Assembly: GCF_006345805.1 (NCBI RefSeq)
Contig: NC_042997.1
Location: 72,540,001 to 72,604,000, forward strand
Direction of reading: 5' to 3'
Length of the DNA stretch: 64,000 nt
DNA from: Octopus sinensis
Taxonomy: Eukaryota
The notes under the pieces are model-generated. The model was not told where the DNA came from, did not search any database, and saw only the letters and a list, made by a program, of their open reading frames with translations. How positions within the stretch are numbered: position 1 is the first letter of the stretch; every line of letters starts with the position of its first letter. Positions 245-61,029 of the stretch are shown here, piece by piece. The position numbers and the translations under genes are program-made.

Positions 245-322
245 AATTCGAGGAGACTACATCAGCAGAAGAGTTAGAGTCTGTAGTCGAAGAGACGGAG
301 AATCTAGAACTAGAGACACCAG
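245..322 (+). CDS. Acidic-repeat mini-exon 1 (type A), EFEETTSAEELESVVEETENLELETP
   Basis: Polypyrimidine tract ttctccttttcgtttctctag, 78 nt, donor ag|gtatga, phase 1-1, no stop; one of 21 homologous copies. Confidence 0.8.
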
Positions 323-630
323 GTATGAATATATACACGTACATACATACATGCATGGATACATGCATGCATGCATACATACATACATACATACATACAT
401 ACATACATACATACATACATACATACATACATACATACATGCACGTGCGTCACAATGTCTATAAGAATTATTCAAATCTGTATTTCAGATGCGTTGTATG
501 ATTGTGTATGGGTTATGTATTATGTCCCAAATATTCAAACAACAAAAAAAAAAAAAGAGAAAAAGATAGCAAATTTTAATATTTAACATTAAATGTTTAT
601 ATAAAAGGTTTCCTATTACTATTTCTCTAG

Positions 631-708
631 AATTCGAAGAGAATACGGTACAAGAAGAGTTGGAATCAGAGGCCGAAGAGACGGAGAAGGTAGAGCTGGA
701 GACTCCAG
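631..708 (+). CDS. Acidic-repeat mini-exon 2 (type B), [26 protein letters not shown]
   Basis: atttctctag acceptor, 78 nt, ag|gtaatg donor, in frame. Confidence 0.8.
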
Positions 709-1706
709 GTAATGATATGTGTATGTGTGTGTGATTGCGTATGTATACACACACACACACACATATGTATGTTTATGTATTCATGTATATATGTATGTAT
801 GAAGTCAAAGTTACGCGTAATTTGGACCAGCACCTTAGGCGCTAAATACTTTTAGGGTTGGTTTTCTCTGTGTACACAACCGAAATATCATATCTGATAT
901 TTCGACTCTCACCAACCGTAGGCCGGAACCCCTGACGTTACCCATGTATGTATGTATGTATGTATGTATGTATGTATGTATTATGTATGTATGTATGTAT
1001 GTATGTATGTATGTATGTATGTATGTCTCTTAAATAGCTTATAAACACATTCCACGCTGCAATTGTTTTCGTTCCTGCACTCGATCTCTGATCAGGTCAC
1101 TTGCTATGCAAACACATCTCTCTCTCTCCCACAATATATATATATATTATATATATATATATATATATATATATATATATATATATATATATATGTAAGA
1201 TTCAGTTGAATCGGGTACTTAAGTTGATGCAGCTTGTTTAGTAGGGATAATACACACGCACAACAATGATTTGCAAATATCAACCTTGGTATATAAATTT
1301 TTAAAACTGTTAAATTATTGGAATGTTCTTCATTGTAAAGTATCCATCTAAGAAAACAGTTTCTTTGAGAATTGATATAATGTACTCATTAATCAATTAA
1401 AAGAGTCATTAGAAACGCCCGTAATGGATTGACAATTGTACTTCATTTGCTATATATATATATATATATATATATATATATTATATATATTATATATTAT
1501 ATATATATATATACATATATACATACATACATACACTCACACACACACATATATATATCTATATATCTATATATCTATATCTATCTATCTATCTATCTAT
1601 CTATCTATCTATCATCTATCTATATATTATATATATATATATATATATATATAATATATATATATATATATAATATATATATATATATATATATATATGT
1701 ATATAT

Positions 1707-2576
1707 GGTCTAGGTAAATTCCAGCATGGTAAATTCCACCCGATAATAATCATCGGTGGTCAGTTTCTCTACACATGGGTCAATACCTATGTTATTTAAT
1801 GTCTAGCTCTCAAGTCTTAAGAAAGGAGAGAGCGAGAGAGAGAAAGAGAGAAAAAGAGAGAGAGAGAGAGCGAGAGAGAGGGGAGAGAGAGAGAGAGAGA
1901 GAGAGAGAGAGAGAGAGAGAGAGAGTCTGAAGGTGAGATTGAAAATAATCTACTTGAATTGAGATACACTTTAATGTACTCTCATCGAGCAAGAATCTAT
2001 GAAAAAGACTCATCACAAAATTTCAAAAATAATATATTTTGGGATAAAGAAAGAAAAGATTAAATTTTAGCACACATTTTATTATAAAAATAGGATAAAA
2101 ATAGCAGCGAGTATATTGTGAAGTAGAGTTAGGATAAGAAAGTTAAAATTATTAAAAAAAAATTCTTAAGGCAATTTTTGTATAATACTTCTTAAAAATT
2201 GCATAGGGGCTTTCATTTTGATACTCTTGAACTATCTTCTTCAGTCGTGCATCAATAATTTGATAGGCCTTTTTTGTTGTTGAGTCTCCACGTCGAACGT
2301 GTGCAATTTTTGTCCGGATTAATCCTTTCTTAGATTTAAGGGTAGTGCATAGTTTCCACAAATTTGGATGTGTGTACGTTAGTGATGAGTGCAAAGCATT
2401 GTGGAACCCTTCTAAATAATAATAATAATAATAATAATAATAATAATAATAATAATAATAATAATAATAATTTCATCTTTAGTGAAATTTAGCATGTTGG
2501 AATATACCGTGGTGGAATTTACCTATGGTGAAATTTACCAGGTGGAATTTTCCGTGGTGGAATTTACCGGTTACCA
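1707..2576 (-). mobile_element. Mutator/MULE-like internally deleted DNA transposon
   Basis: Ends made of inverted GGTAAATTCCACC sub-repeats; minus-strand EGFHNALHSSLTYTHPNLWKLCTTLK...YQIIDARLKKIVQEY resembles a MULE transposase C-terminus. Confidence 0.6.
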
Positions 2577-57239: not shown

Positions 57240-57720
57240 ATGCAGCGTTGTCGAGATACAACATCCGTATGCGATACGACGTTGTGGCAAATACAATATA
57301 CAATACCACTCGAAAAAAGAGAGTCTTGGAATAAATACAGAGAATCACCCTGTTGTTGAATACATACAAAAACATCAACACAAGGAATATTGGTGGAACA
57401 CTCTTATCAAAACATCGTTCAAATGTAAACATAACACATCGCTTGTTTAAAACAGACAAGAAAAATATGTGCCGTTATAGAGGTCAACCGCCCTGCTGAT
57501 GTGAATATCACTTTGATAATCAAGTAGAAAGAGGATAACTACCCAAAACTGCTTGAAACCTCCAACTTCCATACCCAGATTATAAATTTACATTTATCAC
57601 AATAATAATCGCTACACTTGGGTTTGTGAGTAAAGGCCTAAGACAAACTGGATAAGCTAGAGTTTCAGAAAACAAAATTAAGAGGCTAACACGTATATTA
57701 TAAATACAGTTTCTAAGCCT
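57240..57720 (+). mobile_element. R4/Dong-like LINE C-terminal fragment
   Basis: RYDVVA, EYWWN, VEVNRPADVN; similar to 54480-54960. Confidence 0.55.
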
Positions 57721-59751
57721 AACTGTAAAAATATACAAGGCTTTTCTCGAGTTAAAAATGGCATTGTTTTTGTTACATTCCAGCGACGGAGCTTCGTATC
57801 TTTCTTAGAAACTAGCCTCTTCCTCAGAGGAAGAATTCAAATAATTAAGAGAAAATTACATACATACCTACATACATACGTACGTACGTACATACATACA
57901 TACATACATACATACATACATACATACATACTACATACATACATACATACATACATACATACATACATACGTACGCGTACCCATACACACTACATACAAA
58001 CAGACACACACATATACACATATACTGATGCATACATGTACACAACACACATACATATATATGCGCGTGAGTATGTGTGTGTTTACGTCACTAAGTGTAT
58101 ATTTGTATAGATGAAGCAAACATTGGAGATGCATTCTCCCTTGCAGAAAGTGAAGGAGCATCTCAATTGTATTGCAAGCTCTTCTGAATCAATCACAGTG
58201 CCGGACACACTTCTATGTTATTAGCATATATATCACAATCGTTTAATCCTTAGCCTGTACTTGTTCCTGAGAGTGGCAGTCCGGACTAAATTAGTCTTCG
58301 CATGTGGAAGGCTTCCACTTGCAGTCTCATGTCAACTTCAGCGAATTATAGTTTGTTTCAGGTGCCATACCTACCTCTTTGGTTTTTATATATTTATTTT
58401 TTTGTTTTCAGACTAAATCTTGATATTTGGTTTTCTTTAGCTAGTGAGAACTGACGAGTCTGTCCCCTTGGGGCAGAAATATACGAATTTGACGAGAAGT
58501 ATTTGAATTTGACGCGCAGTAAAGTCTCTATTCATCTTTGTATGATTATGCACGGGTTTTGTGTCTCACACAAAATGCACTTGTCGGTCACACTAGGGAA
58601 AGAAGAGTAAAAAATAAACGGAGTGTGAGTGAGAGTCAGAGGTGGTAAAGCAGAACAGCATTATTTTGCTCAGAAGCCGCAGGTATCTTAATAAAAATAT
58701 AACTGTAAATTTTTATCATAGATTGTACTTAGTTAACAGTTTCACACACTGACACACACACACACACACACACACACACACACACACACACACACACACA
58801 CACACCACACACACACACATGAAATTAAATATTAAACACTTTTGCTTGTAAAATATTTTCGTTCACATACCATATATAATGATGTTAAGTGACTCCATTT
58901 CTTACTTTATCCATGTTATACAAAAAAAAAAAAATCTCTCAACCCTGGAATTTTTGCCTTTACAAGTAGGCTGTTATATCTTTGGCACTTATGTGAATTT
59001 TTGTTGCACTGGTACTTATTCATTTATTTTTCCTTGTTATTTGTACACATTGAAAAAATATACATATAAATAAATAAATATATAAATATATATATATATA
59101 TATATATATATATATATATATATATATATATATTATATATATATATATAATATATATATATATACATACATAAAGAGAGAGAGAGAGAGAAGTGGTGTAC
59201 AGATATTGTTTGTTGCAAAAAAGAGGTAGTCAGAATTTTGGATAATTCTTCATTAGCGATTTCGTTCGTTTATCGAACTTGTCACGACAAAATCAAAATG
59301 ATAATTTTGATTTTGTCTTGACGAGTTTGATAAACAAACGAAAGCGCTAATAAAGAATTATCCACAATTCTCATTGCCTCCTTTTGCTCAATATATATAT
59401 ATATTTATATATATATATATATATATATATATATATATATATCAAACTAAAGTTATTGAACAAACAAATGCAAGGTCATCCGCATATCATTTCATCATTC
59501 GAACATTTAATCATAGAATATACATATAAACATCCCGCAAGATGGAACATAATTCATTTGTACAAGCATACAAGCATATAATAATAATAAGGTGCGACAA
59601 AAAATTTTTTTCATCACAGTTTAGAGTTAATACTTTAGCGATTCAGAAAAATACATTTAAAAAAAACAACAACCTAGAAAGTAAAAATATAATATAAAGT
59701 AATATATAAAAATATATAGGTATATAAAAATATATAAAATATATATATATA

Positions 59752-60180
59752 GGCGCAGGAGTGGCTGTGTGGTAAGTAGCTTGCTAACCAACCACATGGT
59801 TCCGGGTTCAGTCCCACTGCGTGGCATCTTGGGCAAGTGTCTTCTGCTATAGCCCCGGGCCGACCAATGCCTTGTGAGTGGATTTGGTAGACGGAAACTG
59901 AAAGAAGCCCGTCGTATATATGTATATATATATATATATGTATGTGTGTGTGTATGTTTGTGTGTCTGTGTTTGTCCCCCAAGCATTGCTTGAGAACCGA
60001 TGCTGGTGTGTTTACGTCCCCGTCACTTAGCGGTTCGGCAAAAGAGACCGATAGAATAAGTACTGGGCTTACAAAGAATAAGTCCCGGGGTCGATTTGCT
60101 CGACTAAAAAAAAAAGGCGGTGCTCCAGCATGGCCGCAGTCAAATGACTGAAACAAGTAAAAGAGAAAGAGAAAAGAGAA
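59752..60180 (+). mobile_element. Full-length tRNA-headed SINE
   Basis: A box tggctgtgtggtaag, B box gggttcagtccc, conserved body, internal (TA)/(TG) tract, A-rich tail. Confidence 0.85.
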
Positions 60181-60954
60181 ATACATATAGGAGCATATAA
60201 AAAATATATAATATATATCATGTAAATAAAATAAAAGTTCATCGTTTAGAAATCTTATTAAATAATTATTGAAGTAAAAGAAGCCTTATAGTTAAAAAGG
60301 GAACCATATTTAAATCTTACTCAGTCATTTGATGGGCTCCACTACCTCAAATGTTCTTAAAATTTAAATCCGCATCTCTATCTTTATATCTCTATAATGT
60401 TGCCACTTGATGTGAAAATGTTTGTGTTAATGGAAAACCTCTATAATTGGCTGATGAGTGCTTAGCATTTTAAAACTGTTGTAATACTTACAACATTTAA
60501 TAAAATGATGTAGTACGAAACAATCGTACCAAGTTACCGGAGTCATTCTTGTTGCTTATTTTGATTATAATCACCCCACGGATTTATATGGATAACACCA
60601 TACAGAATTCTGGTGCATCTAAATTAAGTACCATATTCATTTGAATCTAAATTTTTGCTGAACTTATATATATATATATATATATATATATATATATGTA
60701 CATATGCACACATATATCAGATGTATCTGATTTTTCAGGTGCTTAGTGGTGTGTATATATGTATATATATTTATTAGATTGCTGACATTCGGCAATGGTT
60801 TCTCCCATTATGTTGGTGCGCCATTTTCTATCATTAATAAAACTATCGGTATTTTTGATGACACAAGTATGCTAGTATTCAATTAGTATACAAACGTTTG
60901 AATAATTAATATTAAAACATTCAATGGTAAATTTCCTCCTTTCTGTTTCTCTAG

Positions 60955-61029
60955 AATCTAAGGGGTACACCATACCAGGAGTGTTGGAGTCTGAGGCTGA
61001 CAAGACGGATGGTTTTGAAGTGGACCCAG
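60955..61029 (+). CDS. Divergent mini-exon 21, 75 nt, ESKGYTIPGVLESEADKTDGFEVDP
   Basis: ttcctcctttctgtttctctag acceptor, ag|gtatgaattac donor, multiple of 3, aligns to the repeat. Confidence 0.7.

Follow-up and report, generated by a model that had tools for sequence, protein, structure and literature searches.

Mini-exon units in the window

A stretch of 64,000 nucleotides of the Octopus sinensis chromosome scaffold C1 (C1:72,540,001-72,604,000, + strand), referred to here as the window, was analysed for an array of candidate mini-exons that would together encode a protein repeat rich in glutamic acid (Glu). Positions are given in window coordinates. The genome coordinate is 72,540,000 plus the window coordinate, and positions below 0 or above 64,000 lie outside the window, which was read together with 100 kilobases (kb) on each side (264 kb). 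The genome searched comprised 2,719,151,902 bases in 13,516 scaffolds. The window DNA is about 35% guanine plus cytosine (GC) and rich in microsatellites; Rfam and tRNA scans of the window gave no match. Units were detected with a regular expression (TAG, 78 nucleotides, GT, with a Glu-rich open frame in phase 1), with BLAST and with an nhmmer profile of the exon and its flanks. Diverged units were sought by scanning for a pyrimidine tract, a YAG acceptor (Y, pyrimidine), an open phase-1 frame and a GT donor, with lengths stepped by three.

Analysis of the window revealed 21 homologous segments on the + strand, the same number that a first-pass annotation of this DNA had described. All were recovered with the regular expression and the nhmmer profile, at E values of 1e-23 to 1e-42 for full-length units and 1e-12 for a truncated remnant near 57075. 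Nineteen of the 21 units are intact, and these are preceded by the pyrimidine tract and TAG and followed by GTATGA or GTAA(T/C)G. Seventeen of them are 78 nucleotides long, the one at 40687 is 63 nucleotides and the one at 60955 is 75 nucleotides. Joined in phase 1 through a split codon (G|AA), the intact units encode exactly 488 amino acids with no stop, where about 488 had been estimated, and the exons make up about 2.3% of the window (about 2% in the first-pass annotation). Per 26 amino acids, type A units carry 11 Glu and type B units 12 Glu. The earlier description of a hyper-acidic module almost devoid of lysine and arginine also holds: the 488-residue product is rich in Glu, threonine and leucine, with 41.2% Glu, 1.4% lysine, 0.4% arginine, 4.7% proline, 4.9% valine and 2.5% aspartic acid, and its net charge is about -204. 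The units, and the tandem genomic copies (u2 to u6) that hold some of them, are listed below with strand and means of detection.

245..322 (+): mini-exon of type A, 78 nucleotides, phase 1-1, EFEETTSAEELESVVEETENLELETP; TAG after a pyrimidine tract, GTATGA donor, open frame; nhmmer E = 9e-36.
631..708 (+): mini-exon of type B, 78 nucleotides, donor GTAATG; regular expression and profile.
9751..25613 (+): four complete tandem copies (u2-u5) of a 3.9-4.0-kb unit; full-length alignment.
9751..9828 (+): mini-exon of type A, opening the tandem A/B genomic unit u2 of about 4 kb; regular expression and profile.
10115..10192 (+): mini-exon of type B (u2); regular expression and profile.
13713..13790 (+): mini-exon of type A (u3); regular expression and profile.
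14113..14195 (+): defective type B unit of 83 nucleotides, frameshifted by a 5-nucleotide tandem duplication (ACGGT); sequence and frameshifted translation.
17701..17778 (+): mini-exon of type A (u4); regular expression and profile.
18099..18176 (+): mini-exon of type B (u4); regular expression and profile.
21694..21771 (+): mini-exon of type A (u5); regular expression and profile.
22076..22153 (+): mini-exon of type B (u5); regular expression and profile.
25614..25691 (+): mini-exon of type A (u6); regular expression and profile.
25983..26060 (+): mini-exon of type B (u6), with the longest intron (14.6 kb) behind it; regular expression and profile.
40687..40749 (+): mini-exon, 63 nucleotides, ELEEDLEPETEETEDLKLETP; profile.
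42065..42142 (+): mini-exon, 78 nucleotides, EFEEDTITEESEPETEETENLDLETP; regular expression and profile.
42541..42618 (+): mini-exon, 78 nucleotides; the surrounding 534 nucleotides recur at 96% identity outside the window, 72 kb upstream; regular expression.
44814..44891 (+): mini-exon, 78 nucleotides; regular expression and profile.
46574..46651 (+): mini-exon, 78 nucleotides, used in the Octopus vulgaris gene model CAI9715271.1; regular expression.
48208..48285 (+): mini-exon, 78 nucleotides, first letters CA (alanine); the O. vulgaris model places the acceptor 24 nucleotides further upstream; regular expression.
48459..48536 (+): mini-exon, 78 nucleotides, used in the O. vulgaris model; regular expression.
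57075..57125 (+): degenerate unit with the acceptor AG changed to GG and an in-frame internal deletion of 27 nucleotides; profile, E = 1e-12.
60955..61029 (+): diverged mini-exon, 75 nucleotides, ESKGYTIPGVLESEADKTDGFEVDP, used in the O. vulgaris model; profile.

The defective unit at 14113..14195 would have to be skipped in splicing, or else the reading frame would be broken. A weak AG at 57048, exactly 27 nucleotides upstream of the degenerate unit at 57075, would restore an open exon of 78 nucleotides; the restored frame at 57048-57125 may be fortuitous, or the exon may have been rescued. Run with a high score threshold, Tandem Repeats Finder returned zero rows for the window, because its longest period (500) is far short of the 4-kb unit.

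Extension of the array beyond the window

The earlier observation is borne out and was an understatement: the array is some 2.5 times larger than what the window shows, extending from -45,924 to +132,302 with about 50 phase-1 exons of 36-117 nucleotides. With 50 exons spread over about 178 kb, the predicted product has at least 1,304 amino acids. The profile search found about 50 units between -45,958 and +97,288, all on the + strand except for one inverted fragment. The scan for splice sites and open frames added progressively diverged units at 64666, 95058, 97192, 102329, 109972, 116171, 117056, 120370 and 123005. The last of these, at 123005-123040, combines a strong acceptor with the donor GTAAGT and ends at +123,040. 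The inverted fragment, 33 nucleotides of an exon 3' end with its donor at -8429..-8397 (C1:72,531,571-72,531,603), is the only minus-strand match of the profile and is probably the scar of a rearrangement.

A total of 49 exons were joined into a chain of 3,654 nucleotides encoding 1,218 amino acids with no stop. All of the exons are in phase 1-1. The predominant length is 78 nucleotides (33 exons), followed by 63 (six), 75 (five) and 54 (two), with one exon each of 66, 117 and 36 nucleotides. The introns range from 121 to 14,626 nucleotides with a median of 2.1 kb; hence the giant introns of the first-pass annotation are not a uniform feature of the array. The expanded unit of 117 nucleotides at -9920..-9804 (C1:72,530,080-72,530,196) reads EFEEETENLEAEEETENLEAEESENLEAEESQNLEPETP with a net charge of -19 and grew through an internal in-frame repeat of an 8-amino-acid motif, which shows that the repeat has also grown within an exon, beside the duplication of exons.

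Splice signals and flanking elements

Comparison of the units position by position revealed sharp edges of conservation about 65 nucleotides upstream and about 10-20 nucleotides downstream of each exon. Among 17 paralogues with less than 93% mutual identity, anchored at their splice sites, mean pairwise identity was 0.87 over the last 10 intron bases and 0.65-0.83 over the exon. Behind the exon it was 0.78 over the first 10 intron bases, dropped to 0.37-0.39 over the following 20 bases and reached background (about 0.27) past +30. Every acceptor among the 49 exons is YAG (TAG in 42, CAG in seven), every donor begins with GT, and GTATGA is the donor in 32 of the 49. The exons consist of 67% purines (A+G, rich in GAR), compared with 50% in the region, and a high purine content is expected for exons rich in splicing enhancers.

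The conserved element of about 65 nucleotides upstream of the exons reads, in a gapped alignment, CTTTAAATATTTAATAT-TAAAA.TTTATATAAAAG.TTTCCTCC-TTTCCATTTCTCTAG. Its AT-rich intronic part (CTTTAAATATTTAATAT-TAAAA.TTTATATAAAAG) occupies about -65 to -24 of every unit, for example 180-221 and 566-607, and among old paralogues its conservation is close to that of the exon. A perfect palindrome of 12 nucleotides, TTAAATATTTAA, lies within it. This element is probably a branch-point or splicing-control region. A profile search on both strands found no complementary partner for it.

Nearly every unit has a microsatellite, (ATAC)n/(CATA)n or (TGTA)n, within about 10-20 nucleotides downstream of its GTATGAAT donor, as at 330-440, 10200-10280 and 14200-14420. 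The 4-kb units also hold long (CTAT)n runs, at about 11250-11640 and 15200-15630.

A single locus grown by local duplication

Whether the segments belong to a dispersed transposon family was a question set beforehand in the first-pass annotation, and this attempt at refutation failed. A whole-genome DNA search with one exon and its flanks gave 37 matches, all 37 on the + strand at C1:72,499,671-72,601,039, and all 16 matches of a six-frame protein search fell in the same C1 locus on the + strand. Confinement to one locus and one strand speaks against a transposon. The description of the units as exon-like parts of one gene, neither chance similarities nor dispersed copies, is supported.

Within the locus, different layers of duplication were identified. 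Each of the 3.9-4.0-kb units contains one A exon, one B exon, debris of long interspersed nuclear elements (LINEs) and microsatellites, and the copies u2-u5 differ from one another by 0.56-2.5% substitutions. Further A/B pairs occur at 245/631, 25614/25983 and -6166/-5967. Two other young duplications join -27455..-26445 with -8372..-7364 (98.8% identity) and -30354..-29827 with 42151..42683 (96%, 72 kb apart). Older units have only the exon and its splice regions in common. The array would have grown by repeated local segmental duplication, with the A/B unit of about 4 kb, present in five to seven copies in the window, as its youngest layer, and the microsatellites may have promoted the unequal exchanges that amplified it. 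Since the divergence of the A/B copies (0.56-2.5%) ranges from about the intron divergence between O. sinensis and O. vulgaris (0.54%) to a few times that value, the copy number may differ between the species.

The 14.6-kb intron contains a fragment of a Tc1/mariner transposase helix-turn-helix domain at 30908-31291 (+; PF01498, E = 5.5e-15) and a reverse-transcriptase fragment at 31905-34152 (-; PF00078, E = 2.9e-12). Composition is unusual at 32-36 kb, with a GC fraction of 0.42 and an AT skew of -0.26.

Coding signature of the paralogues

Coding tests were carried out on 17 non-redundant paralogues of 78 nucleotides with less than 93% mutual identity (17 x 25 codons). The proposed frame contained no stop codon in any of them, whereas the other two frames contained 43 and 24. 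The ratio of nonsynonymous to synonymous differences (pN/pS) was 0.45 in the proposed frame (bootstrap interval 0.29-0.68) and 0.94 and 1.08 in the other two. Variation was greatest at the third codon position, the mean pairwise differences at positions 1, 2 and 3 being 0.228, 0.219 and 0.357. The intact units recovered with the DNA profile, which is blind to frame, all have lengths that are multiples of three (54, 63, 66, 75, 78 and 117 nucleotides), and the only length that is not a multiple of three is that of the damaged 83-nucleotide copy at 14113. Units from the splice-site scan were searched for in steps of three and are therefore not counted as evidence on length. It is difficult to account for these features of the paralogous units unless selection acted on splicing and on the encoded peptide.

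Gene models in Octopus vulgaris

Two gene models of O. vulgaris were found to correspond to the array. The first, CAI9715271.1 (A0AA36AH76), is a 'Hypothetical predicted protein' of 238 amino acids and was the sole real relative in an exhaustive protein search; the second, CAI9715272.1 (A0AA36AHV6), bears the same title, has 113 amino acids and was found with a query made from the predicted 3' exons. Together they span 13 exons (46574, 48208, 48459, 60955, 68941, 78099, 88178, 95058, 102329, 116171, 117056, 120370 and 123005). Eleven of the 13 have the predicted boundaries; at 48208 the acceptor is placed 24 nucleotides upstream, and at 120370 a donor inside the exon is used. The models are orthologous fragments of the 3' part of the array, in genomic DNA that is 97-99% identical; they cover the diverged 3' units only, and the hyper-acidic core is absent from them. 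Neither has a name, domain or function attached. The O. vulgaris annotation drew on assembled Iso-Seq and RNA-seq reads, on aligned proteins and on ab initio predictions, the last made on repeat-masked DNA (PMC10700109), and the kind of evidence (transcript, protein or ab initio) behind the two models is not distinguishable. The first-pass annotation had called the gene hidden, and this description stands for the central exons, which have no model in O. vulgaris, and falls for the 3' part, which carries two.

The structure of the models reflects the O. vulgaris assembly in part. In the locus (OX597814.1:67,386,818-67,486,295) a stretch of about 35 kb occurs twice at 99.5-99.98% identity (positions 1-34589 versus 53900-99478), one of the copies with an inverted piece of 9 kb, and O. 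sinensis has a single copy. The duplication is either an uncollapsed or mis-joined piece of assembly or a very recent duplication. The 238-amino-acid model is chimeric because it spans this near-identical duplication. The 113-amino-acid model stops five codons into the terminal exon because the internal donor in 120370 shifts the frame; the full 75-nucleotide exon at 120370 is homologous to its neighbour (...APIHVVPLRKEEMETP versus ...EPIHVIPIRIEEMENT).

Predicted protein

The whole predicted product contains 36% Glu and has a net charge of about -440. The consensus of the 26-amino-acid module opens with EFEE-x4. Units of the core carry a net charge of -10 to -14 each and one unit carries -19, and towards the 3' end the charge declines progressively to about 0 (range -19 to +1). 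At about 0.4 negative charges per residue, and with basic residues nearly absent, the repeat would be expected to behave as a strong polyelectrolyte that is extended and disordered and responds to cations and pH. AlphaFold prediction of the repeat gave a mean predicted local distance difference test score (pLDDT) of 51 and a predicted template modelling score (pTM) of 0.17, with short low-confidence helices that are ended by Thr-Pro at the unit boundaries; this agrees with the disordered product expected in the first-pass annotation.

The chain would finish in a terminal exon at 132,043-132,302, where phase 1 reads through 86 open codons to a TAA stop (SVNNRMSSRKRQLPNY...RRKMRRLKPIMLDFCRRESKGKWAVF). 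The predicted tail of 86 amino acids is basic, with 22 lysine or arginine and five aspartic or glutamic acid residues (net +17), is unique in the genome and is predicted to form two helices (pLDDT about 80).

The first-pass annotation had suggested comparing the repeat with cephalopod and mollusc proteomes, and its guess at a cephalopod host was right; comparison with protein databases produced the O. vulgaris relative and none in other organisms. Among 1.84 billion representative proteins, an exhaustive phmmer search found no homologue from outside Octopus; apart from the O. vulgaris relative it gave two compositional matches in unrelated repeat proteins (E about 1e-5). Word-indexed searches with spliced repeat queries of 463 and 177 amino acids gave no relative beyond the O. 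vulgaris fragment. Pfam and the PDB gave no match for the 1,218-amino-acid chain, the C-terminal 222 amino acids or the 86-amino-acid tail, with Pfam taken up to E of 1 for the last two. Literature searches on the accessions, the repeat peptides and cephalopod acidic repeat proteins found nothing relevant.

Alternative explanations

Different results weigh against the presence of an active gene. Four of about 53 units are disabled, by the frameshift at 14113 and by the loss of splice sites at 57075, -12647 and 88821. The central and most acidic exons have no model in the O. vulgaris annotation, and the protein has no relative beyond Octopus. ATG-to-donor and relaxed acceptor scans over 54 kb upstream of the array (-100 kb to -46 kb) detected neither a start codon nor a signal peptide nor a 5' exon; these scans are heuristic and yielded microsatellite-derived frames only. 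A signal-peptide-like stretch at -52,115 was rejected, being without an ATG and following a (TTA)n run. Of the features that the first-pass annotation had proposed to look for outside the window, a probable stop codon was found, together with a predicted basic tail, and the start and the signal peptide were not. The terminal frame gives modest support only, since open frames of at least 86 codons occur at about 5-6% of positions in the region, and on account of this empirical chance it was rejected as strong proof. Comparison of O. sinensis with O. vulgaris gave three substitutions in 1,131 exon positions (0.27%) and 65 in 12,074 intron positions (0.54%), a difference that is not significant (p = 0.28) and a test without power because the two species are too close, being only about 0.5% diverged. 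Their split is dated to about 2.5 million years ago (PMC10700109). A rough synonymous divergence of about 0.49 (pS) among old paralogues predicts that the repeat family is far older than this split. A tenfold difference between exon and intron divergence (0.27% versus 2.6%) was rejected as evidence, as it was inflated by microsatellite indel columns. The pN/pS of the paralogues reflects past constraint and is no proof of present activity, and what can be said on function is drawn from amino acid composition alone.

Most of these results would also be expected if the array were decaying or had never been translated, that is, if it were a dead gene with recently duplicated or homogenised units or a non-coding RNA locus. 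The four disabled units, the missing start codon in the 54 kb upstream, the central exons without an O. vulgaris model and the non-significant orthologue comparison all fit this explanation. The central A/B units are moreover young, hence their intactness says little on constraint. The old and diverged paralogues speak against it: they have no stop in the proposed frame and many in the other two, a reduced pN/pS in that frame only and the greatest variability at the third codon position, and the length changes of the intact profile-detected units are all multiples of three. Their splice signals have been kept while the introns were randomised, whereas a dead array would decay at the intron rate. 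We consider a dead or non-coding array unlikely, though not negligible.

The first-pass annotation had compared the units with the PEVK region of titin. This region consists mainly of PPAK modules of 26-28 amino acids, interrupted by poly-E motifs with 32-48% Glu (PMC7691732), in which clusters of Glu are separated by hydrophobic residues and the chain is extended and disordered (PMC7691732). The octopus array resembles it in having one 26-amino-acid module per small symmetric exon (33 exons of 78 nucleotides, phase 1-1), and its 41% Glu in the window falls within the poly-E range, with a structure prediction of low confidence. Together with the 5' end that was not found, these likenesses would fit a spring segment, PEVK- or poly-E-like, of a larger known gene such as a homologue of titin, sallimus or twitchin, with its globular exons beyond the 264 kb. 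The comparison ends at exon layout and composition. Unlike titin PEVK, the product lacks modules of the PPAK type rich in proline, valine and lysine (see the window composition above), the 1,218-amino-acid chain has no Pfam match at all and hence none to the PPAK motif, and the exhaustive phmmer search found no homology to titin. No immunoglobulin (Ig) or fibronectin type III (Fn3) exons were found among + strand open reading frames of at least 60 amino acids in 15 kb upstream and about 34 kb downstream, which matched transposase families only. The best 150 I-set matches in the genome cluster densely at C2:91.41-91.95 Mb (+), C2:97.30-97.35 Mb (-) and C1:161.38-162.01 Mb (-), which mark giant muscle-protein genes of the titin, twitchin or sallimus type and are where a true octopus PEVK-like segment would be sought, and none of the 150 is less than 27 Mb from the array, the matches lying at least that far off or on other scaffolds. 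The chain also appears to finish at its own stop codon. With no PPAK modules, Ig neighbours or homology, the product is therefore not a member of the titin family, and a segment of such a gene is very improbable.

Many tandem homologous exons of the same phase could also be mutually exclusive alternatives of the Dscam type, with one or few units per mRNA providing a variable 26-amino-acid segment. The conserved upstream intronic element with its palindrome TTAAATATTTAA is loosely selector-like. Its complementary 'docking' copy was found on neither strand, the sole minus-strand match of the profile being the 33-nucleotide exon-end fragment. Exon lengths from 36 to 117 nucleotides, unit charges from -19 to +1 and introns of up to 14.6 kb do not suit such a cluster either, symmetric exons impose no exclusivity through the frame, and the O. 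vulgaris models join consecutive units. There is, in our view, little chance that the units are used in this way.

A small dispersed mobile element or satellite, its open frame a by-product of purine-rich composition, would account for the sharp-edged unit (about 65, 78 and about 15 nucleotides) and for the (ATAC)n microsatellite that follows it, and is effectively refuted by the occurrence of every copy in the 2.72-Gb genome within one 170-kb locus in one orientation and by the frame-specific absence of stops and pN/pS, which composition alone cannot explain, since in the same sequences neither feature is seen in the other two frames.

Comparison with other acidic proteins

Prothymosin-alpha is a polyacidic disordered protein with a basic C-terminal element, and the structural microtubule-associated proteins MAP2 and tau combine an acidic projection domain with a basic binding end. 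The predicted octopus protein follows the same block plan, with a charge of -440 and then of +17. It differs from prothymosin in being more than 10 times larger, and from MAP2 and tau in having no tubulin-binding repeats and no Pfam match in its tail even at E up to 1. It is also comparable to biomineral matrix proteins of molluscs such as Aspein and Asprich and to otolith or statolith matrix proteins, which are likewise extremely acidic, repetitive, disordered and restricted to lineages. However, proteins of the Aspein/Asprich type are rich in aspartic acid and serine and are secreted, whereas the octopus product is rich in Glu, threonine and leucine (aspartic acid 2.5% in the window) with a basic C-terminus, and the heuristic scans of the 54 kb upstream of its locus yielded no signal peptide exon.

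A candidate lineage-restricted gene of cassette mini-exons

Overall, our analysis suggests that the window is probably the middle of one real, lineage-restricted coding gene on the + strand, at about C1:72,494,077-72,672,302, assembled from about 50 cassette mini-exons. This interpretation of the locus as a gene is well supported by the evolutionary signatures of the units and by the partial models of the sister species, and the same two sources underlie the proposed exon junctions. What is new would be a gene without a family; the architecture of one module per mini-exon is known.

The proposed gene would work as follows. Small exons within kilobase introns would be recognised jointly through the purine-rich exon, the polypyrimidine tract with its acceptor, the donor and the AT-rich element of about 40 nucleotides. 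All exons are symmetric, therefore any subset of them could be spliced without a break in the frame, and the length of the protein would be set by the number of exons present or included, through skipping or duplication. Going by its composition, the acidic repeat may act as an extended, intrinsically disordered polyelectrolyte that serves as a spacer, a brush or a binder of cations or basic partners. The basic and partly helical C-terminal tail may be an anchor to an acidic surface, a localisation signal or a segment that folds back on the acidic region. The kinase sites (CK2 and proline-directed) and the role in Ca2+ binding or in a mineral-associated matrix that the first-pass annotation had considered are conjectural.

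A more specific form of this interpretation is put forward tentatively, as a possibility that we do not favour at present. The locus could be an octopod (or cephalopod) orphan gene that arose from one amplified 78-nucleotide exon. Its product would be among the most negative of large proteins (about -440), with a small basic anchor and a length tunable by cassette splicing and by exon copy number. In some tissue specific to cephalopods it might serve as a polyelectrolyte brush or spacer, or as a high-capacity sink for cations or basic proteins. Its tiny exons, lying inside repeat-masked tandem units, would have made gene predictors miss it systematically.

The value of the finding depends on expression data. 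If the array is transcribed as predicted, a protein of at least 1,300 amino acids is essentially missing from current octopus annotations, and the locus would be a concrete case of how arrays with one repeat per mini-exon escape gene prediction when they lie in repeat-masked units. It would also offer a natural example of recent exon duplication setting the length of a polyanionic disordered protein, and an independent case, outside titin, in which a symmetric mini-exon equals one disordered module.

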